DNA of 64,000 bases from the NCBI GenBank assembly GCA_051530055.1, contig CM121342.1, positions 9,687,480-9,751,479 of the forward strand, written 5' to 3'. The DNA comes from Neoechinorhynchus agilis (taxonomy: Eukaryota > Animalia > Acanthocephala). How positions within the stretch are numbered: position 1 is the first letter of the stretch; every line of letters starts with the position of its first letter. Of this stretch, positions 1,025-20,650 are shown one piece after another. The position numbers and the translations under genes are program-made. The notes under the pieces were generated by a model, which ran no database searches, was not told the DNA's origin, and saw only the letters and a list, made by a program, of their open reading frames with translations.

Positions 1025-2281
1025 AGCGTTCTTAAAAGATATGAATAGTTTAAAATGTTTGTCGCCTAATTTAAAAAATTATTCCTCTTTAATAAGATTC
1101 TTCGTACCCGTTCAATGGTACTCAATGAACTATTCCTGGTTATTCGGAGTTAGGGTTATATAGTACTTTGTATTTTAGGTGTTTAATTGAGTCATTTTTC
1201 ATATCTTAAATTTCAGTCATTGAATTTTAGCACTTCAATATTTAAGGACGATGAATGAATTGCCCGATTTAAAGAATCAAACATTTTTGAATACCTGTAA
1301 ATATTGATGAAAAATTTGTTCATACAATGACATCGGAAACATTTAATAAAAATCAAAAATTCAAGTTTATTGGATATATTAATTTTGCGATTTTCTTAAG
1401 CTCTTCCAAATGATATAAGCATGGCAAAAATAAAATCGGTACTGTGATCTGACGCCAAGTAATAATATATTACAATCATATTGTAAGATACCAAAAGTCA
1501 AAGAGCTGAATCATAAAATTAGCGTTAAAACCTTGAGAAATGTAATTTTTGAAACGAAAATAGATATTTCAACTCACGCAGAAAAATCTAGTCGATGAGA
1601 TCTTAAAAAGCAATATTTGAAATACAATTAAAAAATATTGTTAGGGATGGAAATATATTTCTGAATGGTAAGGATATTCTGGCAAAAATTCGGCTTTAAA
1701 CGCGCTTAATTATGAGGCAGCTGAATTTTACCGATCAAAAACAATATTAAAAGTTGAAAGAGCAAAAGCTCGTAAAACTCAGACATTTTAACCATCTTGA
1801 ATAAAGAAAAGGGGTGCAAGTGAGCTTATTTTAAGGTTCAAATACACTTTAAATTCAGAATTATAAGTCACAGCGAGCACAATCTTTTCAGACTATCCAA
1901 ACAACCCTCAAAATGGCTTTGTAAGTATTTTGTAGAACTTTCCCGTCGTCTATGGCACATAATGAAGCGAATATGGAAATCAGCGTTATGCAACCATGCC
2001 ATTTTGTTCGAGTCTACCAACATAATGCAATCACTGTTGATTCAAAGGTTCAATTTTTTCCTTTACATCAAGAGAAACGTCTGGGACACTCACGTTTTTG
2101 AAATAATTTTGTAGGCAAACAAGGCGGTAACTACGGTCCACAACAACTCTTGTTTTTATTTGTTTTTTACAATTCTCAAGATGTTTGGATTACAGAAAGT
2201 GCCGTTCATGTGTTCCAGAAGTTCATCCTGGAATATAACAAGGCTGGTAGACTAGTGCGTTCTATTAATCAGACTGTCTAA
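1025..2281 (+). CDS. Intron-rich gene of unknown product with tiny exons; 5' end not located and may extend further upstream
   Basis: Phase-consistent GT-AG introns, e.g. 1820-1858 (39 nt) and 1921-1967, join into ...ILTILNKEKGCKIISHSEHNLFRLSKQPSKWLSNMEISVMQPCHFVRVYQHNAITVDSKANKAVTTVHNNSYVWITESAVHVFQKFILEYNKAGRLVRSINQTV-stop (TAA 2279-2281). No family recognised. Confidence 0.55.
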
Positions 2282-6560: not shown

Positions 6561-6703
6561 CGCTGATATGGCTGCACCTCCAGCGATTTCGAGAGAGTTA
6601 GATTAAAACGATAGAATAACTAAGCAAGCCAAATCGACAACAAATATAGACGTTATAAATTCAGAACAAATTTAATTGCGCTCAGACGACAGGATTATAA
6701 AAT

Positions 6704-6835
6704 TCACTGAATTGAACATCCGCTGCTTTTTGGAGGAGTCTGTGGACAACAATAGGGTGCGGGATACGAGTAAGCAGTTGGGTAACCATTGTAGATTGGT
6801 CGAGGGTAGTAGGATCCGTAATAACCGCCGTACAT
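6704..6835 (-). CDS. 43-aa Tyr/Pro-rich CaaX microprotein, copy A
   Basis: MYGGYYGSYYPRPIYNGYPTAYSYPAPYCCPQTPPKSSGCSIQ-stop; three paralogues in the window share the frame and the C-x-I-Q-stop end. Confidence 0.75.
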   Translation of the reverse strand: MYGGYYGSYYPRPIYNGYPTAYSYPAPYCCPQTPPKSSGCSIQ

Positions 6836-7202
6836 TTGTTTGAAAGAACTTTGAAACTAAACCAAGTAGTAGATGTTTTCAAAAATGATTTTACATCCTT
6901 TTGTACCGAAAAGTGAGTAATTTTGAGATAATGGGTGGGTGGGTACATGGGTTTTTTTTCGCGTGCGCTAGAGACTCACCGACGAAAAACGTTGCACCTC
7001 AGTCATACACATAAAAGACTTACGTGAATTATTAAAACTCGAATTTTAAGCATTTGAGTAACAATGAACAAAAACAATCAATGGAAACTGATCATCACTC
7101 AGTCTTCTCAATACGACCATCATCGGTCTTAGCCTAAAATCATTGCTCGGTATCAAAATGGGCCACTAACTTTCAATCGGCCGAAGAAGACGACATGGAA
7201 CA

Positions 7203-7490
7203 ATGAGATATGGATTAATGAACCAAGATTTGTTCCAGTATAATCCATACATGAACTCTAATCCTTTGTGTTGTCCGCAGCATCAACCACAGATTTGTCG
7301 ATGCAGCACTTTAACGTCCTTTGGTCAGAATCAATTTCTACCACAACCAATCGGAAGTTTTACCAATCTGGGACAAATGTCGTCTTGTAAAAGAATGATG
7401 CACAGCCTTCCCTTGATAAGTCCATCGCCGAATTGCAATTTTCCAATCATTGGCACTGCTCGAAGCTGTTGTTGCAGTAGAAGTTATTAG
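7203..7490 (+). CDS. 95-aa Gln/Pro/Cys-rich small protein, divergent from CaaX copy A
   Basis: ORF with a CCPQ motif shared with the CaaX peptides and a CCC near the end; a paralogue lies at 15971-16180. Confidence 0.45.
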   Translation: MRYGLMNQDLFQYNPYMNSNPLCCPQHQPQICRCSTLTSFGQNQFLPQPIGSFTNLGQMSSCKRMMHSLPLISPSPNCNFPIIGTARSCCCSRSY

Positions 7491-7944
7491 AGACGAAAGT
7501 TTTTAGAGAAATAAAGATTTAAATACTTGGTTTTCATAGCAGAATAGAACTTTATTCGAAGTAACCCTTTTTTCGAGCAGTGATTAATCTTTTCTAAGCG
7601 GAACGAAAAATAATTATATAATTATAAAAACTATTTTTTATATCAATCAAAATTACGTTGAACAAATCATTTTTTCGTTAATTGCGTAAATTCGATTAAT
7701 ATTCGGCGTAGTTTATATTTCCTGATCCACTTTTGTTTTTTTTTGTTATGAAGTAATTTGACCAGCAATACAAGGTCCGGCACATAAAAGACAACAACTG
7801 AGAGTACTGAATTTTAGAAATATTAACCACCTAGAGCAGTGGGTAACGAATGGGTAACCCCGGTCAACAAAAAATAAATACTTTTAATTGCTCCCTCATC
7901 TTTGAGGAGAGAACAACGTTCTTAAATGACAAAAGTAAACACAA

Positions 7945-8090
7945 CAACTCTTGTTTTTGAAAGTCAATTTCTTTTTCAAATTCTCAAGATGTTTGGATTA
8001 CAGAAAGTGCCGTTCATGTGTTCCAGAAGTTCATCCTTGAATATAACAAGGCTGGTAAACTAGTGCGTTTTATTAATAAGACTGTCTAAA
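7945..8090 (+). pseudogene. Duplicated last intron and exon of the 1025-2281 gene
   Basis: Near-identical to about 2140-2285; encodes VWITESAVHVFQKFILEYNKAGKLVRFINKTV-stop. No upstream exons seen. Confidence 0.65.
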
Positions 8091-8355
8091 ATGTTTGCCG
8101 CATTTAATAATATTTGATGAGATTGAAACGTAATTTTATTAAAATTTTAATGAGCAAACCGTTCAATTTAATTGAAATAATCAGTCGTCTGAAAAAGTGC
8201 TACATTTTGAGCCTCACTTCCCACCTAATTCTCACAAAAACTCTCCACCTAACTCTCTCAAAACTGCCCACCAAATTATCTTAAAACTCCCCACCTTCAT
8301 TGATTATCTACGCAAAAAACATTGTCCCACAAGAGCTTCTGTTCGAAAACATCCA

Positions 8356-10673
8356 TAGCATTGCGTTGGGGTTCGCCGGCGGATACACGGTCCCCCAACT
8401 TTAAGAATGGCGATTAAAAGTCATATAAAGAACATAGCAAGTAAAAAAATTTTCATATAACTGTAGAGTCTAGATTACCCTGTGAAATTCTAATCTACGG
8501 ACGTTGTGGTGCTATGAATCCCGCTAACTCCTTCACGCCATTAAATGTCAGTAGAACAATACGCTCGAAAGTTACGTTTTAGTTTGAGACTTCGGTGAAA
8601 TGGTTGACAATTTAGATGGAGAATCTGAGTATTTTTGTGGCTAAAAGTTGAACACTTTTTGGTGTACATTTACTCCTGCCGTTATTATAACCTTATGTTT
8701 ATGAGATTAAAAAGTTGCGATTTCAGTTCAAACCCATGGTTAAGAGAGAGATGAAGACGCTTAAGCGTTACCTTTGTACGTCTTAAAATACCTGGATAAA
8801 ATCTTCTTGCTCATATTCTGTCTATTATGAACCTATCTAAAACTCACAAAGGATAAAACTTTGAAAAAGCATAGAAATCAAGTAGGGTAACTTTCTTAGT
8901 AATACGTTAAAGTGAGGTAAAATGAATCATTCAGAAATCAACCTTAGCCATTTACGATTCAAACACACAAAAATCCGAGTTTAAGGTACTTTGAGTAAAC
9001 GCTTTCTAACGCTTTGATAAAAATGAAGTCAATCTTTATACTTACGATACTCTGCACGCTGCTACTATTAAATCAAAGTACGAAGTTGTCCAATAAATGT
9101 ATTATATCGTTCGATAAGCCCGATTATGCAATCATCAAATGCGGTGGTGCAGAAAACTCCAGTGAAACGCATTTGAATTTAGAGGATACAGTTAATAAAA
9201 TAATCAAAAACGAAGTTTCTGTACTATTAATGGACGGACTTCCAATTAAAGAAATACCAATGAACTTAAGTGATATATTCCCAAAACTCTCTGAGATATA
9301 CATTCTACAACACACTGCACTATCTTCAAACCTAGCACTGGATTTTGCTGGAAATGTAAAGAAAATCCATCTGCAAGATACAAAGATCGAACAGATTTAC
9401 TTAACAAAAATTTTGCCAGTTGAAGAAATCGTTATTACTGGATCAAAACTTTCATCTATTCATCCAGAAGTAGGCAAAGGGCTTCCATTCTTGAATGTCT
9501 TAAGCTTAAGCAATAACAATCTGAGCAATATCAATACGCTCGTAGGATTTTGCAGTTTAAGAGAACTGAACATAGACGAAAATCAAATAGCGGTTCTCGA
9601 ATTCTCAAAAGAAATGTGCTTTTCCAATTTGAAAAAAATATCGGCTTTGAAAAATCCGACGTATTCGACAAAAATCGACGCGAGTGTAAATTTGAACAAC
9701 CTTCGGGAAATTAAAATTTCTGTAATTGGCGGGATCGGAGTCCATATTCAAGAGTTACAAAAGATTCAAAGTCTACAACGAATCACAATTCAGGGAGGAG
9801 CCGACCGAAGATACGATGCCTCGGAGTTAAAAAATCTTTGGAATTTAAGGTTGTTAGAGTTAATCAAGGGAAATTTAAAAGCAGTACCAAAAGGTGGAAT
9901 CTTGACAAATACGACTATTACGGCACTGTCTGTCGCTTGGAATTCGATTTTAACGATACAAAAATCGGATTTTGAACAATGGACACGACTTGAATATTTG
10001 GACCTATCGAATAATAATATGAAATTTATAACATTTGATGCTTTCGAACTACTCTTCAGTTTACGCATTCTTAGTTTTAAAGGTAATAACGTACCGAAAA
10101 AAGATGTCTTCAGCTCATTATTCCGATTGCGTTGGAAATCGACATCAAATTTGCTTGAAAGAATATTTTTGGCAAAAAAATACAAGAAATATTTTTCCAG
10201 AGTATCGAGTGTCGAAGGATATTGGACCGGCCATTTAGATTTTTGGACTATGAGATTCGGAAAACAATGCGTTAATTAAAGCTATAAATTTTTGTCATGA
10301 GTTGTATTGGACGCTTGATAGGGATAAGCAACAATGCGGCAATTACCTATTTCCACATTTTTGTTTCACCTAATAGTTACATTTAAATTTGATCTAAACG
10401 TCCAGTTTAAATAACGGAATAATACCGAAAATGATAATTGTCAAGTGTGCGGATTAAACACTTAAAAGCAATGACAAATGTTTTGAAAAAATGTCGGAAT
10501 TATCCGACGTGAAATATCGGAAATAAATCCAAAACTACCAAAAGAAAATATCTTTTTCCTATCGAAGACAATAATCAAAGACATTATTTTAGATTTTTCA
10601 ATAGGTCGCGCAAACTTGGAGGCGGAAATATTTTTTGTGGTTAAAAGTAAATTTGCTCAATCTTTGTAAGTTT
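8356..10673. repeat. 2.3-kb segment duplicated in inverted orientation at 37387-39703
   Basis: Direct comparison; shared sequence starts at tagcattgcgttgggg and ends at ctttgtaagttt. Confidence 0.95.
9023..10279 (+). CDS. Secreted leucine-rich-repeat protein, copy 1
   Basis: Intronless ORF (ATG 9023); hydrophobic N-terminal signal; LxxLxLxxNxL repeats (LNVLSLSNNNL, LEYLDLSNNNM); no transmembrane segment seen. Confidence 0.9.
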   Translation: MKSIFILTILCTLLLLNQSTKLSNKCIISFDKPDYAIIKCGGAENSSETHLNLEDTVNKIIKNEVSVLLMDGLPIKEIPMNLSDIFPKLSEIYILQHTALSSNLALDFAGNVKKIHLQDTKIEQIYLTKILPVEEIVITGSKLSSIHPEVGKGLPFLNVLSLSNNNLSNINTLVGFCSLRELNIDENQIAVLEFSKEMCFSNLKKISALKNPTYSTKIDASVNLNNLREIKISVIGGIGVHIQELQKIQSLQRITIQGGADRRYDASELKNLWNLRLLELIKGNLKAVPKGGILTNTTITALSVAWNSILTIQKSDFEQWTRLEYLDLSNNNMKFITFDAFELLFSLRILSFKGNNVPKKDVFSSLFRLRWKSTSNLLERIFLAKKYKKYFSRVSSVEGYWTGHLDFWTMRFGKQCVN

Positions 10674-10719
10674 ATTATAATAATACGTTTTATTTGTTGA
10701 TTCATAAAGAAGAGGAACC

Positions 10720-11700
10720 AATTTACCTTCCCCGCTTGCGTTCCTCTGCGGCAATTGCAGCACTTCATTCGCATTGCGAGGAATATCTTAGATTGGACAG
10801 AGCAAGAATGTCCGCACAAGTAGCGTCCCAGAGAAGGGATTTCCCTTCTCGCCACGGGAACACAGTTACCCCATCCGGTCTTCGACCGTCGAGTCTGCAG
10901 AGGTGACTCGGTTCGAGCAGATTCGGTTGGAAAAGTTGGGAGTTTTAGTGCCTCCGATGGAGGATGTTTTTGGTTCAGGGTTTCGAGAGTTTTCTAGGAT
11001 GCAAACAGCTCCTCGGATATCACCATCAGCAATTTTCGAGGAGGTGCGTTCCCCTATGGACCTAGCCGGAAAATTAGGTGTTCTGTAGGCCCGCGATAGG
11101 TAGCTCGAATTGCGTCTGAAAAGAGTTGATCGAAGGACGCGACCCTTTCTTTGATTGAGGTCACCAACGACCCCTCGGAACTGTCACCAGCGCGAAGAAC
11201 CAGCCTGGTAAAAGCGAAGAGACGTGTCCATGCAATGTCAGAACCGTTCTCTAAGAAATCCCCAAGGATACCGAGCGCCCTTTGGGATCCGTTTCAGGAT
11301 GTTGCTGTGCAGAACGCGCAACATATCAGGGAATGGCGTGAGAATGATCTGAGGCGCTGGGACATTCCGAGGAGGTTGTAGGTCCGAGATGACAGACCTT
11401 GGGGGCGGAAGGAACCAGAACAGCGGGATCTGAAGGGACCGTGCATCCGAAATAACCCGGATTTGTTGAGGCAATAGAAATCACCAAACTCCGAACAAAA
11501 ACTACCAGAGAAAAGGTGACCCGGAGGTTCGATACCTCGGCGTTTTGCTGTAAAGCTGTTGCGTCATCATCATTGAATTCGACGTTGTCCGATTGTCGTG
11601 TGATGGGTGATGATGGTTGAAAATGTTCTGACGAGGAGACCAGGCCTAACGCTTGTTGATTATTACCACTTAATCTCATATTGTTGGAATCCAATGCTTG
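10720..11700 (-). mobile_element. Internally deleted CRE-like element, N-terminal region fused to the RLE domain
   Basis: ILKRIPKGAR, KIADGDIRGAV and LNQKHP join near 10905 to [30 protein letters not shown]; the RT domain is absent. Confidence 0.75.
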
Positions 11701-12242
11701 CTTGTAGGTTACTGTATTTTATCCTGGACTAATTCTATGTGTTGAACATTGCTTGTAAGTTTTTGTTTGCAAGTGTTTAATCGCTAGCTTCTCTACCTGC
11801 TTAGAAAGCTTTCCATGACGTCACAGTTATGCACTACATTGCATAGCTCTGTCCTATGCTTTGCCCTTTAAGGGACTCCGCGAGAGGGAGTCCCCCATTT
11901 ATATCCAGGATTAAAACCTCGTCCAAACACATAAACATTGCTGACGTCATAAGACTAAGCATTTTTCACAATTTTCTATATTTTTCTCCATACATTTGTC
12001 GCTAACACACATTCTTCTTGACGTCTGTTTTCGTCATGAAACTCGATCGAACCATCATAGTTTTTGCAGCGTAAAAAGTATATCTTACTTTAAAATTGTT
12101 GATCGGACCATCATAGTCTTCACAGCATAAGAAGTTTCGTACTTTAACGTATACGCGTTATCATTTTTGAAGTGTTCTCGATCAAAATTGTGTACTATTG
12201 CGTCACTCGGGGGATATGGATGGGTGACGTGCGTCTTTAGCA

Positions 12243-12942
12243 CACAAATCCACCGGTTGAAACGATAAGTCTCAATAGTTCGCAGTTTGGTGGCTACTCT
12301 ACTATTTACGACACGTTTACCGAGAATTAAGTCGTCTGCAAATGATTTAACGCACAAGTACAGCGAGATATTAAACACTTCTGCCAACTACGCTGGTCAA
12401 TTCATTTTATAAGTAGACACTGAGCGCAGATGATGAAGTCGCCGCTGGCGGATAAATCGTCGAGAAGAAACGTAATTTCCGCGTGGAAAACCTCGTTCGT
12501 TCTCACATTTGTAATAAATCCAGACCGCCTAGTGCGCATTAGTGTTGTTGCTCCTAGGTAGGCTTCCGACTTAGAGGCGTTCAGTCGTAATCCTGCGGGC
12601 GAAGCTTACCGAGTGCTTGTACCTGATGTCCAAACCTGCGGTTCCTCTCGTACTTAGCAATCTTTTGCTCTTTCGCTCTATGCGAGGTTTCTGTCCACGC
12701 TGAGATTGCCTTAGGATACCTGCGTTAGGTTTTAACAGATGTACCGCTCCAGTTAAACTCCCAATCAGTCTGTGTTCTCAGACCAGACACTCCTTCGACA
12801 CTAAAGAAAGGATTATATATCGCAATTAGCGAATTAACGCTCGCTGAATCACTGAGTTAGTAAATGAACAATGATGGTAGTGGTATTTCACCGGCGCGGC
12901 CTCCCACCTGTTCTACTCCCATCATGTTTCTTCACAGAGACT

Positions 12943-12980
<38 letters not shown>

Positions 12981-13051
12981 TGGTTTCGCTAGGCTGCAGA
13001 CAGGGACAGTAGGAATCTCAATCACTAATTAGATGACGAGGCATTTGGCTA
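12243..13051 (-). rRNA. Isolated, degenerate 3' part of 28S rRNA (pseudo-rRNA) starting at the R2 target site
   Basis: Minus strand reads TAGCCAAATGCCTCGTCATCTAATTAGTG...GAAGACCCTGTTGAGCTTGACTCTAG...ACTGAACGCCTCTAAGTC...CATTTGCAGACGACTT...GATTTGT; short internal deletions relative to the recalled eukaryotic 28S core. Confidence 0.92.
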
Positions 13052-13640
13052 GTTAAATTTATCAAATACAACAGGCGTTCGTGAGGCCATTCCTCTGATT
13101 GTATCGCGATCATTCTTAGATTATTCCTCTTGAACGAATTGTTTTTCTTGTTCGTCCATAATTGTATCGATTGTGCATGAATGCATTGAACGCTATCAAT
13201 GACTTTTCTGCTGCTGTAAGAACGAGATTCAGCCCGGTTTTCAGATTTAGGTATAGCTTACTCAAAGTTGAGAGAAGGTTATTTGAGATGGTACCTCTGC
13301 TTCCCACGACGATAGGTACTACTTCTATTGCCTCCTTCCTTACCCCAAACACACTAGCTGTAGCGGGCCGTGTATTCTGCGGTTACTAACTCTCGTTCAT
13401 AATAGACGGCAACATCAAATACTTTTACAGCAGCGTTCCTGTTATCATACATTATAATGCCTGGCTTGAAGAGAGCTCCTGTGTCTGTTATAATTTGATT
13501 TTCGGTTCTAATATGGGCATTCTTTATTGCCGGCTTAGTATTCGCATTTTGTATGGCCCATACAAGCCTCTTCTGTACCACGTCATGTAACCTAATCATG
13601 GCTCCTGCGTTGCCTTCACAATCGTTAAGGACATGTGGAT
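13052..13640 (-). mobile_element. 3' end of an R2 retrotransposon (end of CCHC motif, RLE domain, about 65-nt 3' UTR)
   Basis: PHVLNDC...IRLHDVV, KPGII...FDVAV and VVPIVVGSRG motifs; abuts TAGCC of 28S at the canonical R2 site; frameshifted. Confidence 0.85.
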
Positions 13641-15110
13641 TGGTTTAACGGCGTTTGCTGCTCCCCTGGTTTAATAGTGGCGAATTTTATGTTGCTGGCT
13701 GCGAGCGTGTCCACGAACGTGGCATCCCAGAGAACAGATTTGCCTCCGCTCGCCACAGGAATATTGTGGCAACGTCCGGTCTATGGCGGCCATCGAGTCG
13801 GCAAAGATTGCTAGGCTATAGGATGTTGGGCGCATTCACAGTATTCAGGGCACGACTGAGAATTGCGTTCACTTCGGCGTCGTAAGTGCACCTTTCCCCT
13901 GATTGTGACAGACGAGACCATTCCATTCCGATGGCTCCACAGTCGTCCGCAATGGCAGCTGTGGGGTGTACACATCGGTACCCGAAGTCTCAGGTTCACT
14001 GCAATCCCTACTATCTCGTCGGAGAGAAGGTTATGCACAGAAGTTTTTGGGATAGCGTTGAGCCAAGCACCCGATTCTCTTGTACAGACTGCCGCCAGTC
14101 GAGTTCGGTTCACCAGGTCACGAAAATCTGAAATTAAAGAGTTATGAATTCTTGCTACCAGGGGTGAGTCCAAACTGACCGTTTGCAACCATTGACGGGG
14201 ACCTGCTCGCTGCCTGAATCTCCACACCAAAGATTAAGAGCCTCCACGAAATCTCCATCAAAAGTGTAATTCTCGCCAAGAACGGATTGAAATATTTTGC
14301 GGCTTGCTTCATCGGATCCCAAATAAGCTGGCAGAGAAATATCGGCTGCTTTTCGAATACCCAAACCGCCGGACGACCCAGGCAAGGACGCTTGATGCCA
14401 AGCCTCGTCCGAAAACTGAGTATTTAAAATTTTCTCGAGAGAGGCCTTTACCGTCTCATCTAATTTTGCCAGCTTATTCTTATGTCTAAAAAAGGTGCTG
14501 TGCGCAGCTTGTACAGTACTTTTGGAATAAAGAGGGTGTTCTTGATCAGGAACAGGGCCTCGTGTAAAGAGAATTCATCAACTCGTTTGCACAGCACCGA
14601 AAGTTGCGGTTGAAGATTGGCAATCTCTGCTTCAACATTAGAACCGAAAATGCAACTTCCTAGAAGACTCAACCGGTCAAGAATGATCAATTCTATCCCG
14701 GGAGCCGGTTCTGAAAATCGTTCACGATAGTTTGCCTGGACGCCTCATCTTTCACGTTCATCACTAATATCTCGCAATTCGCGGCATTCAATGCCAATTT
14801 TCGCCGTCTTCTTCACGAGTGTCTCAAAATCGCGCAGTACTACAGACGGGTTACCTCCGAGCGTGGCATCGTCCAGATACCAGCCGTTAAGGCTGGACTG
14901 GAGATAGTGCACGACGGGATTGATTGCGAATGAGAAAGCTATTGGTCCCAAAGGATCCCTTTGTTGATCTCCTCATTCTGATCACAAAACGTTGTCATTG
15001 AACAACAAGGGAGCTGAAGTCTCATGGGCATTAACGAAATAGCGAAATGCTTCTGGTGCGTGATATCTTACTACTTCGAGCAAATCTGCTCTGTGAACTG
15101 TGTTGAAATC
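13641..15110 (-). mobile_element. CRE-like retrotransposon RT and partial RLE, decayed
   Basis: QQGDPLGP...WYLDD, GGLGIR, RESGAWLNAIP, LRLR..C..H.C.CG and WDATFVDTLAAS motifs spread across frames. Confidence 0.85.
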
Positions 15111-15561
15111 ACGTTAAGGCTACCAAAAACACTCGTTCAATAACCGGTTTTCTTAGAACCTGCATATAGGAATTAATTCGTTATAAAAAGCTTTCCATTA
15201 TTTCGAACTTTTGATAGAAATTACAGTATCGAAAGTTGAAATAAGATATTTTCTAGCTATTGCCTTTTGATGAATGAAACTGCAGAAAATATTAAATCAT
15301 GAGGAAATTTAATCATTTTTGCGAAAAATGAGCCGCTTATGAGTTCGGAGTGATCATAGGACCTCAATCTCTAAATTTCAAGTTAAAATGAAATACTCAA
15401 TATAGTATTTCTTTGTCAAGGATGAATTCTTTAATAGCGCTGGAACCAATAGAATTGTTGTTTTTAGATCGGATTTGTCAAATTCAGTAATAACGCGATA
15501 AATCCACGCCTAAAACATCAAAAATAAATTAAGTGCCGATTTAATGTTAAGACTATTAATG

Positions 15562-15693
15562 TTATTGAATTGAACATCCGCTGCTTTTTGGAGGAGTCTG
15601 TGGACAACAATAGGGTGCGGGATACGAGTAAGTAGTTGGGTACACATTGTAGATTGGTTGAGGGTAGTAGGATCCGTAATAACCGCCGTACAT
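15562..15693 (-). CDS. 43-aa CaaX microprotein, copy B
   Basis: MYGGYYGSYYPQPIYNVYPTTYSYPAPYCCPQTPPKSSGCSIQ-stop; ends CAA TAA where copy A has CAG TGA. Confidence 0.75.
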   Translation of the reverse strand: MYGGYYGSYYPQPIYNVYPTTYSYPAPYCCPQTPPKSSGCSIQ

Positions 15694-15970
15694 TTCTTGA
15701 AATAGAGATGAAACTAAACCAAGTTGTAGATGTTTTCAAAAATGATTTTACGTCCTTTTGTAACATGTTTTCAAAAATGATTTTACGTCCTTTTGTAACG
15801 AACAGTGAGTAATTTTGAGATAATGTGTGGGTGGTTGTTATTCACGCACGTTTACAGAGCTAAATTTCTCCTTAACTTAGTCACACAAAAATATCGCTAA
15901 TTGTTCAAAATGAATAAAAGCAATAAATTAGCATTTCCAAATGACATCCGAAGATTCACCTACCTCAGAA

Positions 15971-16180
15971 TTAGTTCTCAAACGAAATACCTTTAGACAT
16001 TTGTCCTAGATTGGTAAAACTTCCGATTGGTTGTGGTAGAAATTGATTCTGACCAAAGGACGTTAAAGTGCTGCATCGACAAATCTGTGGTTGATGCTGC
16101 GGACAACACAAAGGATTAGAGTTCATGTATGGATTATACTGGAACAAATCTTGGTTCATTAATCCATATCTTATTGTTCC
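15971..16180 (-). CDS. Paralogue of the 7203-7490 Gln/Pro/Cys-rich ORF with a different 3' end
   Basis: Near-identical through NLGQMS, then diverges at a possible donor (AAAG/gtattt); the first ATG is changed to ATA. Confidence 0.4.
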   Translation of the reverse strand, partial: GTIRYGLMNQDLFQYNPYMNSNPLCCPQHQPQICRCSTLTSFGQNQFLPQPIGSFTNLGQMSKGISFEN

Positions 16181-16500
16181 ATGTCGTCTTCTTCGGCCGA
16201 TTGAAAGTTAGTGGCCCATTTTGATACCGAGCAATGATTTTAGACTAAGAACGATGATAGTCGTATTGAGAAGACTGAGTGATGATCAGTTTCCATTGAT
16301 TGTTTTATTGTAACATCATTGACTCGGATACGTTTTAATTTTTTAGATTTTATGGAAATCCCCCTTTACTGTCACTATGTTAAGCATCTTTTATGTTCGC
16401 CGTGTAAACCTCCCACAATTACTCATTTTTAAGCTCATAAAAAGCATGAACGCATCTTTTCCTTTGAGTCTTTTTCGTTTTCACCATTGTCGTATACGAC

Positions 16501-16635
16501 ATGTACAGCAGCTACTGTTACGGATCCTACTACCCTCGACCAATCTACAATGTGTACCCAACTACTTACTCGTATGCAGCTCCCTATTGTTGTCCACAGA
16601 CTCCTCCAAAAAGCAGCGGATGTTCAATTCAATAA
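16501..16635 (+). CDS. 44-aa CaaX microprotein, copy C
   Basis: MYSSYCYGSYYPRPIYNVYPTTYSYAAPYCCPQTPPKSSGCSIQ-stop; differs from A and B by an in-frame one-codon indel. Confidence 0.75.
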   Translation: MYSSYCYGSYYPRPIYNVYPTTYSYAAPYCCPQTPPKSSGCSIQ

Positions 16636-17227
16636 CTTTAATAGTCCTGTCGTTTGAGCCGAATTAAATGTGCTTTCATCTCGTAATGAATGTAGCCGTC
16701 GGGTTTTCACCTTAGCATTGATATTGCAAAAATTGTGCTTTTTTGAACTTTTTATTCGTTCATATTGCCTTACTATAACTTAATCATATTTTTTGTGGTG
16801 CAAATGCAAAGGTCTGACTTTAAAGAATTCGCGCGCTTGCACAGTAAACTCTAATGCTCAGAATATCATTGCTCATTATTAATGTTTTCGAAGATATTTG
16901 ATGGCGTGCGTTGGTATTGAACGATCTTTTTCAATACAAATGACACTTTTTAATTTTAAGCCGCCGTATCATATAGAAAATGGATTCCTTGGTGAAGGTT
17001 ATTCATTTAAATACAACGATTGGGGTTGCATTTGGCAAAAAATCTTTAGTAGAAGGCATGAGTGTTGCTTGACGTGCTTAAAGTAGTATACAAACGATGA
17101 TAATGACTCGACTAAAAACACTGAAAACGTTCATTAAGTGACTAAGGTTGCCCACCTTGAACTTAGTCACATTTAGATTACAAATGTTCTGAGAAATTTG
17201 CTTAGACATTTCTGCAACAAAATCGAG

Positions 17228-17365
17228 ATGTATCGCGGTTATTCCCAATCGATTTGTTATCCGCGATCAGGCTACAATGTGTACCCTCCATTAACCGTCC
17301 AAGTTAGGTCATATTGTCCACCATGCCCTCCCGAACGTCGTAGACGAAGATGTACGATTCAATAA
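17228..17365 (+). CDS. 45-aa CaaX microprotein, divergent copy D with polybasic tail
   Basis: MYRGYSQSICYPRSGYNVYPPLTVQVRSYCPPCPPERRRRRCTIQ-stop. Confidence 0.72.
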   Translation: MYRGYSQSICYPRSGYNVYPPLTVQVRSYCPPCPPERRRRRCTIQ

Positions 17366-17680
17366 CCTATTTGCTCAATAAATTTGGTCTGACGTATTGT
17401 TTCTTGCTTGAGGCTCCATGGATTATTTTACTCAATAAATATTTTATAAAGATTGTCGCATTCTAAACGGTCATTTCAATAGGGATGAAGAATTTACGCA
17501 GACTAGGGATTTCCCTTTGGAAGTGAACACAATTAAAATTTCGATGCATTTAATAAGCGTAAACACAATCGCCCTTCTCACCATGGGATCGAAAAAGTTG
17601 TTGTGACCAATGAAAGCCTTGTTACCATAACAACTTAATTTCGAATTTCTGCGAGTAAACTTAAAATCGAGCGACCTAGA

Positions 17681-20650
17681 ATGCATATTATACTTCTTGC
17701 TTTTATTTCGTTCATTAAACAATTAAGTTCTTTACCCATTTCAACAATGGACGCAGTTGATGAATTCATATTTTCTACGACAAAGCCGGATTATAATCAA
17801 ATAAAAGTAATGGTCGCACCTTCGCGATTGAAATATCAGCAATCCAATCAACGGGATATCACAAGAGAAAGTAAAGAATTGAGTTCCGCAACCAAAATCA
17901 CGAAATCTACGGATGTCAGCACTCAGGGAGAAGGGCCTGTAAATTTGAGCGAAAAAATGTCAATTGAATCTGGCGATAATGATCGCTTAATGAATAGTCT
18001 GGAAACAACCAAAGAAACCGCCGTGAATCCGTCGGACATTCAAAGGAGTGGCACAATGTTGCAAATTGATCAAAACACCAGTTCTACTTTGATTTCTACG
18101 GAAAGTGAAATCAGCACGGCTTCTTCTAAAGTTGAAATCACCACCTCTAACGATGCCAGCACTCAGGGAGAAGGGTTTGTTAATTTGAACGAAAAAATGT
18201 CAATTGAATCTGACGATAATGATCGCTTAATGAATAGTCTGGCAACAACCAAAGAAACCGCCGTGAACCCGCCGGACATTCAAAGGAGTGGTACGATGCT
18301 GCAAATTGATCAAAACAGCAATTCTACTTTGATTTCTACGGAAAGTGAAATCAGCACGGCTTCTTCTAAAATTGAAATCACCACCTCTAACGATGCCAGC
18401 ACTCAGGGAGAAGGGTTTGTTAATTTGAACGAAAAAATGTCAATTGAATCTGACGATAATGATCGCTTAATGAATAGTCTGGAAACAACCAAAGAAACCG
18501 CCGTGAATCCGCCGGACATTCAAAGGAGTGGTACGATGCTGCAAATTGATCAAAACAGCAATTCTACTTTGATTTCTACGGAAAGTGAAATCAGCACGGC
18601 TTCTTCTAAAGTTGAAATCACCACCTCTAACGATGCCAGCACTCAGGGAGAAGGGTTTGTTAATTTGAGCGAAAAAATGTCAATTGAATCTGACGATAAT
18701 GATCGCTTAATGAATAGTCTGGCAACAACCAAAGAAACCGCCGTGAACCCGCCGGACATTCAAAGGAGTGGTACGATGCTGCAAATTGATCAAAACAGCA
18801 ATTCTACTTTGATTTCTACGGAAAGTGAAATCAGCACGGCTTCTTCTAAAGTTGAAATCACCACCTCTAACGATGCCAGCACTCAGGGAGAAGGGTTTGT
18901 TAATTTGAACGAAAAAATGTCAATTGAATCTGACGATAATGATCGCTTAATGAATAGTCTGGCAACAACCAAAGAAACCGCCGTGAACCCGCCGGACATT
19001 CAAAGGAGTGGTACGATGCTGCAAATTGATCAAAACAGCAATTCCACTTTGATTTCTACGGAAAGTGAAATCAGCACGGCTTCTTCTAAAGTTGAAATCA
19101 CCACCTCTAACGATGCCAGCACTCAGGGAGAAGGGTTTGTTAATTTGAGCGAAAAAATGTCAATTGAATCTGACGATAATGATCGCTTAATGAATAGTCT
19201 GGAAACAACCAAAGAAACCGCCGTGAATCCGCCGGACATTCAAAGGAGTGGTACGATGCTGCAAATTGATCAAAACAGCAATTCTACTTTGATTTCTACG
19301 GAAAGTGAAATCAGCACGGCTTCTTCTAAAGTTGAAATCACCACCTCTAACGATGCCAGCACTCAGGGAGAAGGGTTTGTTAATTTGAGCGAAAAAATGT
19401 CAATTGAATCTGGCGATAATGATCGCTTAATGAATAGTCTGGAAACAACCAAAGAAACCGCCGTGAATCCGCCGGACATTCCAAGGAGTGGTACGATGCT
19501 GCAAATTGATCAAAACAGCAATTCCACTTTGATTTCTACGCAAAGTGTAATCAGCACGGCTTCTTCTAAAGTTGAAATCACCACCTCTGAGGATGCCAGC
19601 ACTCAGGGAGAAGGGTTTCCTAATTTGGGCGAAAAAATGTCGATTGAATCTGGCGATAATGATCGCTTAATGAATAGTCTGGAAACAACCAAAGTAACCG
19701 CCGTGAACCCGCCGGACATTCAAAGGAGTGGTACGATGCTGCAAATTGATCAAAACAGCAATTCCACTTTGATTTCTACGCAAAGTGAAATCAGCACGGC
19801 TTCTTCTAAAGTTGAAATCACCACCTCTAAGGATGCCAGCACTCAGGGAGAAAGGTTTGTTAATTTGGGCGAAAAAATGTCGATTGAATCTGGCGATAAT
19901 GATCGCTTAATGAATAATCTAGAACCAACCAAAGTAACCGCCGTTAACCCGCCGGACATTCAAAGGAGTGGCACAATGTTGCAAATTGATCAAAACACCA
20001 GTTCCACTTTGATTTCTACGCAAAGTGAAATCAGCACGGCTTCTAAAGTTGAAATCACAACCTCAGGTTCGCATCCTGCCGAAACAATGGAATTCAAAGG
20101 GTCTCAACCGTTCCAGAGAAGTACCGATAATGGTGTTGAGGACGATTTGAGTGTAAATGGTGCTAAATCAGCTAACGGAAGCACCGAATTCTCTTCGTCC
20201 GCTGAATTTTCTGATGCGATAGAAGGCCGTACGGCGTTCACAAGTTTCCCATTTTCCTCTAGCATCGGCGTTGCGGAATCCGTTACAAATGCAATCATTA
20301 CTGATGGAACAACATTGTCGATAAGCGAGTACCTCTCTCGGGAGAGTTCTCCGTTGCATTTAAAGAATTCCAGTTCGCTCGGATCAACTTTAACAGCACA
20401 AGTGACCGTCGCACCTAACGTTAGTTTTAATGATACAACGATGCCAAGTCTTCAGAATAAACAAGTAACCATATCAGAGAAGATGTCCATGGCAAATATG
20501 GATAATTCAAAACTCAGTAGTTTCTCAAGTGATGTTTTAAAAATGACATCTATCACTTTAAACGAAATTGCTTTTACGGAAAATGTTAGTCAAGAAGCAA
20601 TTGCATTATCGATTGAGAGTAAATCAAACATTGATGGAAAAAGTGTGTGA
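17681..20650 (+). CDS. Secreted Ser/Thr-rich mucin-like protein, 989 aa
   Basis: N-terminal hydrophobic signal and about nine 80-aa S/T/E-rich repeats. A GTGAGT donor overlaps the last codons, so a further exon is possible. Confidence 0.85.
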   Translation: MHIILLAFISFIKQLSSLPISTMDAVDEFIFSTTKPDYNQIKVMVAPSRLKYQQSNQRDITRESKELSSATKITKSTDVSTQGEGPVNLSEKMSIESGDNDRLMNSLETTKETAVNPSDIQRSGTMLQIDQNTSSTLISTESEISTASSKVEITTSNDASTQGEGFVNLNEKMSIESDDNDRLMNSLATTKETAVNPPDIQRSGTMLQIDQNSNSTLISTESEISTASSKIEITTSNDASTQGEGFVNLNEKMSIESDDNDRLMNSLETTKETAVNPPDIQRSGTMLQIDQNSNSTLISTESEISTASSKVEITTSNDASTQGEGFVNLSEKMSIESDDNDRLMNSLATTKETAVNPPDIQRSGTMLQIDQNSNSTLISTESEISTASSKVEITTSNDASTQGEGFVNLNEKMSIESDDNDRLMNSLATTKETAVNPPDIQRSGTMLQIDQNSNSTLISTESEISTASSKVEITTSNDASTQGEGFVNLSEKMSIESDDNDRLMNSLETTKETAVNPPDIQRSGTMLQIDQNSNSTLISTESEISTASSKVEITTSNDASTQGEGFVNLSEKMSIESGDNDRLMNSLETTKETAVNPPDIPRSGTMLQIDQNSNSTLISTQSVISTASSKVEITTSEDASTQGEGFPNLGEKMSIESGDNDRLMNSLETTKVTAVNPPDIQRSGTMLQIDQNSNSTLISTQSEISTASSKVEITTSKDASTQGERFVNLGEKMSIESGDNDRLMNNLEPTKVTAVNPPDIQRSGTMLQIDQNTSSTLISTQSEISTASKVEITTSGSHPAETMEFKGSQPFQRSTDNGVEDDLSVNGAKSANGSTEFSSSAEFSDAIEGRTAFTSFPFSSSIGVAESVTNAIITDGTTLSISEYLSRESSPLHLKNSSSLGSTLTAQVTVAPNVSFNDTTMPSLQNKQVTISEKMSMANMDNSKLSSFSSDVLKMTSITLNEIAFTENVSQEAIALSIESKSNIDGKSV
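17918..20050 (+). repeat. 240-bp coding tandem repeat, about 9 copies
   Basis: cagcactcagggagaa recurs every 240 bp. Confidence 0.97.

Follow-up and report, generated by a model that had tools for sequence, protein, structure and literature searches.

On chromosome C2 (contig CM121342.1), the acanthocephalan Neoechinorhynchus agilis carries a cluster of five single-exon open reading frames (ORFs), spanning roughly 38 kb, that probably encode a family of very small tyrosine- and proline-rich peptides ending in a CaaX box. Four of these ORFs (copies A to D) lie in a stretch of 64,000 nucleotides (C2:9687480-9751479, hereafter the window), and the fifth (copy E) is found 18.4 kb ahead of it. The explanation put forward here is that the ORFs encode a family of disordered microproteins, rich in Tyr and Pro and restricted to this lineage, that are held by a farnesyl anchor and in which a cysteine pair (CC) or a polybasic run would provide a second membrane signal, a reading that, on the sequences at hand, is given about an even chance of being correct. 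Its first premise, namely that the five ORFs are translated genes, is quite likely to hold. The available data support the view that they behave as protein-coding genes under constraint, since frame, start and stop appear to have been kept across diverged copies.

The original prediction, which had been drawn from the letters of the window, described four ORFs whose products all start with MY and end in C-S/T-I-Q-stop. All four are present as ATG-initiated ORFs on the strands indicated there, and alignment of their products bears out both ends. Copies A (6704-6835, minus strand; coding part 6707-6835, stop TGA at 6704-6706) and B (15562-15693, minus strand, stop TAA) encode 43 amino acids (aa) each, copy C (16501-16635, plus strand) encodes 44, with one additional in-frame codon, and the divergent copy D (17228-17365, plus strand) encodes 45, its tail reading PPERRRRRCTIQ. 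Copies A-C end in CSIQ and D ends in CTIQ. Codon alignment confirmed the 3-nucleotide (nt) insertion of C, as well as the CAG TGA end of A versus the CAA TAA of the other copies. The search for further copies suggested in the original prediction was performed over the assembly (46,219,100 bases in 102 contigs), using six-frame searches with A, with D and with a family profile, together with DNA searches, the DNA-level comparisons being confined to the N. agilis genome, which has been published as a draft of 46.2 Mb with 94% in three contigs, alongside 74 RNA-seq libraries (PMC12690905). Six copies were recovered in total, five of them in the cluster. Copy E (C2:9668985-9669113), a 42-aa ORF with the tail PERRRGCSIQ, was the sole further intact copy retrieved by the six-frame and profile searches, and a broken sixth copy was found on C1 (match span C1:17994490-17994969) by the DNA search with B and its flanks.

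At the protein level, A shares 93% identity with B, 88% with C and 42-44% with D; copies A, B, C and E, with identities of 88-93%, are young duplicates. The peptides start with MYGGYYGSYY, and of 43 residues 10 are Tyr, 8 Pro and 3-4 Cys. The linker ahead of the CaaX box takes one of two forms, a flexible, polar one (PQTPPKSSG) and a polybasic one (PPERRRRR). The split noticed in the original prediction, with CC in A-C (residues 29-30) and RRRRR directly ahead of the CaaX cysteine in D, is borne out, and copy E bridges these two tail types, since it combines the CC pair seen in A-C with an arginine run (RRR) resembling that of D. The main difference between B and E is one 21-nt in-frame patch that changes TPPKSSG to PERRRG. 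The copies have mosaic relationships: A shares its near upstream region with B and E, and its far upstream region and 3' end with C, and B and E have 300 nt of downstream sequence in common. A transposon origin of the family was considered and rejected, as the genome contains just six copies, five of them clustered together, and D lacks any other match at the DNA level. The possibility that E and B are retrocopies was equally rejected, because their similarity reaches ~300 nt beyond the poly(A) hexamer and takes in the partner gene on C1, which indicates segmental duplication instead.

Among the six copies the last five codons have undergone the changes CAA>CAG (twice), ATT>ATA, TAA>TGA and TCA>ACG (Ser>Thr), and C-[S/T]-I-Q-stop was maintained through all of them. 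The cysteine lies four residues from the C-terminus in the five intact copies, with Ile at the a2 position and Gln at X. Such an ending is rare in the surroundings: of 607 ATG-initiated ORFs of 25-150 aa in the 104 kb around the cluster, six end in C-x-[VILMF]-[SMAQC], five of which belong to the microprotein family, corresponding to a background of one in 602 other small ORFs. An aliphatic a2 residue combined with Ser, Met, Ala, Gln or Cys at X directs farnesylation rather than geranylgeranylation. The original prediction had regarded CaaX with X=Q as a farnesyltransferase signal, and CxIQ is indeed documented in the farnesylated proteins PDE6A (CCIQ) and RAP2A (CNIQ), with lamin A ending in CSIM (PMC7674641, Table 1), so that both C-x-I-Q and a Ser at a1 have precedent.

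Since the genome of this parasite is reduced, the presence of the processing enzymes was checked. According to sequence matches, the genome encodes farnesyltransferase (FTase) alpha- and beta-like subunits, an Rce1-like protease (C1:17558340-17558642) and ICMT (C2:6216995-6217294). The FTase beta-like gene (C2:5272901-5274253) has FTase beta as its best match in the PDB (1e-31, versus 1e-6 for the beta subunit of geranylgeranyltransferase type I, GGTase-I), and the FNTA-like alpha gene, on C3, matches FTase alpha at 1e-45. A Rab-GGTase alpha gene on C2 and a Rab-GGTase beta gene (C2:13313285-13314278) were also identified, the latter and the FTase-beta-like gene being the two prenyltransferase beta loci found. 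No GGTase-I beta was seen in the genome search, in which the best candidates alone were scored, and this absence is therefore tentative; if real, all CaaX proteins of N. agilis would depend on FTase.

The rest of the peptide is compatible with a cytosolic, accessible C-terminus. Inspection of the sequences revealed no hydrophobic leader or stretch in any copy, and AlphaFold, supplied with the five-sequence alignment, returned a mean predicted local distance difference test score (pLDDT) of 53 and no secondary structure. The peptides are thus predicted to be disordered, and their C-terminus should be accessible in the cytosol. A polybasic run is a classic companion of the farnesyl anchor, and RRRRR in D immediately precedes the CaaX cysteine, with RRR in E ending one residue before it. 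Copies A-C have one Lys, and their CC pair is 10-11 residues upstream of the CaaX cysteine. In the proposed mechanism, the five genes would produce cytosolic, disordered Tyr/Pro/Gly-rich peptides of 42-45 residues, to which FTase would add a farnesyl group at the CaaX cysteine; Rce1 would then cut off the last three residues and ICMT would methylate the new C-terminus, leaving the peptide on the cytoplasmic face of a membrane. Binding would be reinforced by the polybasic run (D, E), by a palmitoylatable cysteine pair (A, B, C, E) or by both, and the Tyr/Pro-rich body would form a membrane-tethered, sticky low-complexity segment offering a cross-linkable or docking surface. Transcription, translation, farnesylation, palmitoylation and any structural role are, in this scheme, what the sequences lead us to infer.

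The evidence for coding capacity comes chiefly from D and from the broken copy on C1. Of the three frames, frame 0 alone stays open in all five intact copies, D having stops in frames +1 and +2 and E in frame +2. In the multiple alignment D resembles the other copies solely from about -3 of the ATG through the stop, and the local alignments B-C, C-E, B-D and E-D all begin at -3 of the ATG, with those of B-C and C-E ending ~11 nt past the stop. D differs from E at 50 of 129 aligned bases (39%), all indels are in frame and D contains no stop. When 50 random substitutions were scattered over the ORF of E in a neutral simulation, ATG, open frame and stop survived in 0.45% of the trials, and the CaaX box was additionally kept in 0.01%. 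Moreover, every stop is followed by AATAAA or ATTAAA, beginning 11-27 nt downstream, namely ATTAAA after A (6671-6676, minus strand, 27 nt), after B (15540-15545, minus strand, 16 nt) and after C (16663-16668, plus strand, 27 nt) and AATAAA after D (17377-17382, plus strand, 11 nt); these hexamers occur in 10% of random 46-nt stretches of the window, and the copies amount to about three independent lineages for this statistic. Values of dN/dS, the ratio of nonsynonymous to synonymous substitution rates (Nei-Gojobori), were 0.2-0.55 in nine of the ten copy pairs, with few sites available. Codon bias was also considered and discarded as too weak: Tyr is encoded by TAC in 7 of 10 cases in A, B and E versus 34% in neighbouring long ORFs (P = 0.02), and in just 2 of 6 cases in D.

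The broken copy on C1 (ORF remnant at L021:2153-2272, that is C1 ~17994552-17994671, plus strand) provides the opposite picture. Identity to B amounts to 79% over the ORF and to 78% over the flank downstream, and this near-equal divergence indicates that the C1 copy is drifting neutrally. An 11-nt insertion has created a TAA after codon 7, a CGA codon has become TGA, and two deletions, of 21 nt and of 2 nt, have occurred. Although this copy is far less diverged than D, it is already broken, whereas D is intact. The C1 copy is an ordinary pseudogene, and as a neutral control it lends weight to the coding status of the five intact copies. The original prediction had used frame preservation as its coding argument and had considered that copies freely accumulating frameshifts would speak against it. 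The argument is weak when restricted to A-C and becomes informative when D and the C1 copy are brought in; as for frameshifted copies, a single, dispersed one exists, and five intact copies keep the frame.

Database searches did not place the microproteins in any known group. Searched against Pfam at E up to 10, copies A, C, D and E matched no family, the keratin-associated protein (KRTAP), G-gamma and fungal pheromone models included; a word search of 5.8 billion proteins with the five-sequence alignment gave no match; the sole match of a profile search of 1.84 billion representatives, a 981-aa repeat protein, was spurious; and the ESM Atlas gave no usable match with a query that was displaced by one codon. 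This absence of relatives is weak evidence, because 43-codon ORFs are rarely called in eukaryotic genomes. The microproteins belong to no known protein family and, judging by motif alone, fit the class of CaaX proteins, but differ from every member known to us by the complete lack of a folded domain.

Among the alternatives, the one that fares best holds that the peptides are made and not lipidated, being small cytosolic matrix proteins like the high-glycine-tyrosine KRTAPs or cornified-envelope proteins, with the cysteines (the C-terminal one too) and the tyrosines engaged in cross-links in hooks, tegument or egg envelopes. This is considered unlikely, and it could in any case coexist with farnesylation. 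Size, Tyr/Pro/Cys content and predicted disorder would all suit such a role, as would the tandem clustering of single-exon genes and their pairing with a Cys/Pro/Gln-rich small ORF (F, described below). It leaves unexplained, however, both the retention of C-[S/T]-I-Q-stop through five changes and the position of the polybasic run directly before the box in D and E, besides the failure to match KRTAP or any other Pfam family.

Several observations weigh against farnesyl-anchored microproteins, some of them favouring the possibility that the ORFs are untranslated, having stayed open by composition in a recently duplicated segment that perhaps contains a non-coding RNA or a regulatory region of F. 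A-C lack stops in all three forward frames, an effect of composition. In the young copies, conservation is no higher in the ORFs than in the flanks (93% and 96%, respectively, in B-E), and given that flanks and ORFs are equally similar in A, B, C and E, frame preservation among these copies says little by itself. The dN/dS values are moderately low and based on small site counts, and the E-D differences, distributed over the codon positions as 19, 12 and 19, show no third-position excess. It is consequently D and the pseudogene control that carry most of the coding case. The exact sequences of A-E are absent from a collection of 15 billion proteins, meaning that nobody has called these genes. 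The CC pair, at ~10 residues from the CaaX cysteine, is farther away than in the classic Ras cases. Finally, the pattern TTAsTCAyNTTT, with CCCAC before it, has three matches in the window (0.33 expected), all upstream of A, C and D in gene orientation (TTACTCACTTTT at 6909-6920, minus strand, ~80 nt ahead of the ATG of A; TTACTCATTTTT at 16419-16430, plus strand, ~76 nt ahead of that of C; TTAGTCACATTT at 17163-17174, plus strand, ~59 nt ahead of that of D), but it was defined after seeing the sequences and should be taken as a lead; it might possibly correspond to an initiator or transcription start.

That one copy has decayed and that the cluster is rich in retroelements would also fit a segment without translated genes. 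This alternative is nevertheless improbable. It has to accommodate a copy, D, that keeps ATG, frame, stop and CaaX box at 39% divergence (simulated P ~0.005, or 0.0001 with the CaaX box) and whose similarity is limited to the ORF, in a family where frame 0 alone is open in all five members. The synonymous and stop-to-stop changes at the end of the ORF argue against a constraint acting at the nucleotide level, and poly(A) hexamers are present past each stop. One member of the F family (F5) exists without a microprotein partner, so that the ORF is not needed as an F promoter.

It is far less probable still that the ORFs are the last exons of larger, unrecognised spliced genes. The AG dinucleotides found within the 7-17 open in-frame codons upstream of the ATG would allow it, but similarity in C and D sets in exactly at the ATG, which never varies, no conservation is seen between it and the nearest in-frame stop upstream, and the orientation relative to neighbouring genes varies among copies. 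As to precursors of exported farnesylated lipopeptide signals like the fungal a-factor, a type of pheromone that to our knowledge occurs in fungi alone, the ~40-residue length, the terminal CaaX box and the several diverging copies are suggestive, yet the possibility is very slight, given that no Pfam pheromone match and no receptor or exporter context were seen and that the polybasic tail of D and E fits membrane retention better than export.

The partner just mentioned, F, is a second family of small ORFs whose 95-aa products are rich in Gln, Pro and Cys and end in CCCSRSY. It has five copies: F1 (7203-7490, plus strand, 95 aa), head-to-head with A; F2 (15971-16159, minus strand), head-to-head with C and truncated at the end of an inverted repeat; F3 (C2:9666443-9666727); F4, on C1; and the solo F5 (C2:9675988-9676272). 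In piece coordinates, the F-family ORFs outside the window are at L019:8961-9308 (minus strand), L018:8509-8793 (plus strand) and L021:1529-1876 (minus strand). The head-to-head arrangement with F is found for copies A, C and E and for the C1 pseudogene. F4 adjoins that broken copy and is itself intact and of the same length, with dN/dS of ~0.4 versus F1 and F3, and by these signs F is probably a gene. No homologues of F appeared in the word search, and Pfam gave nothing useful at E up to 10. A BLASTP comparison of F with the microproteins showed 9 of 20 identities over YxxxxPxCCPQxxPxxxxCS; the idea that F is a decayed member of their family was rejected as unproven, because its score with the family hidden Markov model was no better than that of 82 of 1000 shuffles. 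F is therefore part of the duplicated unit and not detectably a member of the microprotein family. An (ATT)n microsatellite of ~240 nt (L018:7860-8100) occupies the place where the partner of F5 would be expected.

The genes of the window are those of an animal, including an ASPM-like protein with ASH and CH domains, leucine-rich repeat (LRR) proteins and retroelements, and the cluster itself also contains an LRR gene, LRR fragments, retroelement ORFs and a fragment of 28S rRNA. The last corresponds to the 3' third of a eukaryotic 28S molecule (12246-12986, minus strand; Rfam LSU, 280 bits), lies outside an rDNA array and sits among retroelement ORFs, between copies A and B. The 5' region of B carries a perfect 35-bp tandem duplication (15730-15799), which repeats a portion of the interval separating the ATG from the upstream motif. 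An LRR protein gene is located at 9014-10279 (plus strand), and two LRR fragments are found just upstream of E (L004:24-569 and 1193-1381, plus strand), the second of which duplicates a portion of the first and stops at the beginning of the E unit, as if the latter had been copied into an LRR gene. Directly downstream of D lies an ORF of 989 aa (17681-20650, plus strand) with nine tandem repeats of 240 nt (80 aa) at 96% identity (17912-20064), whose Pfam matches are weak and probably spurious.

If the microproteins are made and farnesylated, they would represent an animal protein consisting of scarcely anything beyond a lipid anchor and a 40-residue sticky low-complexity segment; we know of no described family built in this way, and a full-text literature search returned no paper on farnesylated CaaX microproteins. 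They would add a gene class overlooked by standard annotation, in a parasite with a strongly reduced genome, and would supply concrete candidates for proteins of the acanthocephalan body wall, hooks or egg envelopes. Rotifers and acanthocephalans are defined by a dense intrasyncytial lamina under the plasma membrane of the tegument. It is conceivable, though doubtful, that the microproteins and F are membrane-tethered building blocks of this dense sub-plasma-membrane layer of the syncytial tegument, or of the hooks, in which the farnesyl group would hold a cross-linkable, Tyr/Cys-rich matrix against the membrane. Should there be no expression, the genes would simply constitute a well-preserved family of small ORFs in a duplicated region.

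When compared with known systems, the microproteins resemble three groups of proteins. Fungal a-factor precursors have a similar length (35-45 residues) and, as their conserved feature, solely a C-terminal CaaX box, which is processed by FTase, Rce1 or Ste24, and ICMT; the N. agilis peptides, however, come from an animal, have no mating-locus or receptor context, share no sequence similarity with these precursors and display polybasic tails. The mammalian high-glycine-tyrosine KRTAPs (KRTAP6, 19-22) are likewise encoded by very small single-exon genes in tandem clusters, start with M-x-Y-Y, are rich in Tyr and Gly with few Cys and have no signal peptide. The microproteins lack Pfam or profile similarity to them, are Pro-rich rather than Gly-rich and possess a conserved CaaX end that KRTAPs do not have, and any likeness, being between different phyla, would be convergent.

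The third group is formed by the membrane-targeting tails of CaaX proteins. Like these, the microproteins have a flexible polar linker before the box, and the processing enzymes are encoded in the genome. They differ from these proteins in having no GTPase, phosphatase or other folded domain and no sequence homology, and, in comparison with Ras, in the greater distance of the CC pair from the box; apart from the tail, each consists of nothing but a disordered Tyr/Pro-rich peptide of 40 residues. The arginine run of D and E recalls the tails of the K-Ras4B and PRL/PTP4A type, where a polybasic stretch accompanies the farnesyl group, and the upstream cysteines of A-C and E recall those of the H-Ras and paralemmin type, which combine palmitoylated cysteines with farnesyl. 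In the box itself, the microproteins agree with PDE6A and PTP4A1 (CCIQ) and with RAP2A (CNIQ) in the Cys at -4, the Ile at a2 and the Gln at X (PMC7674641).

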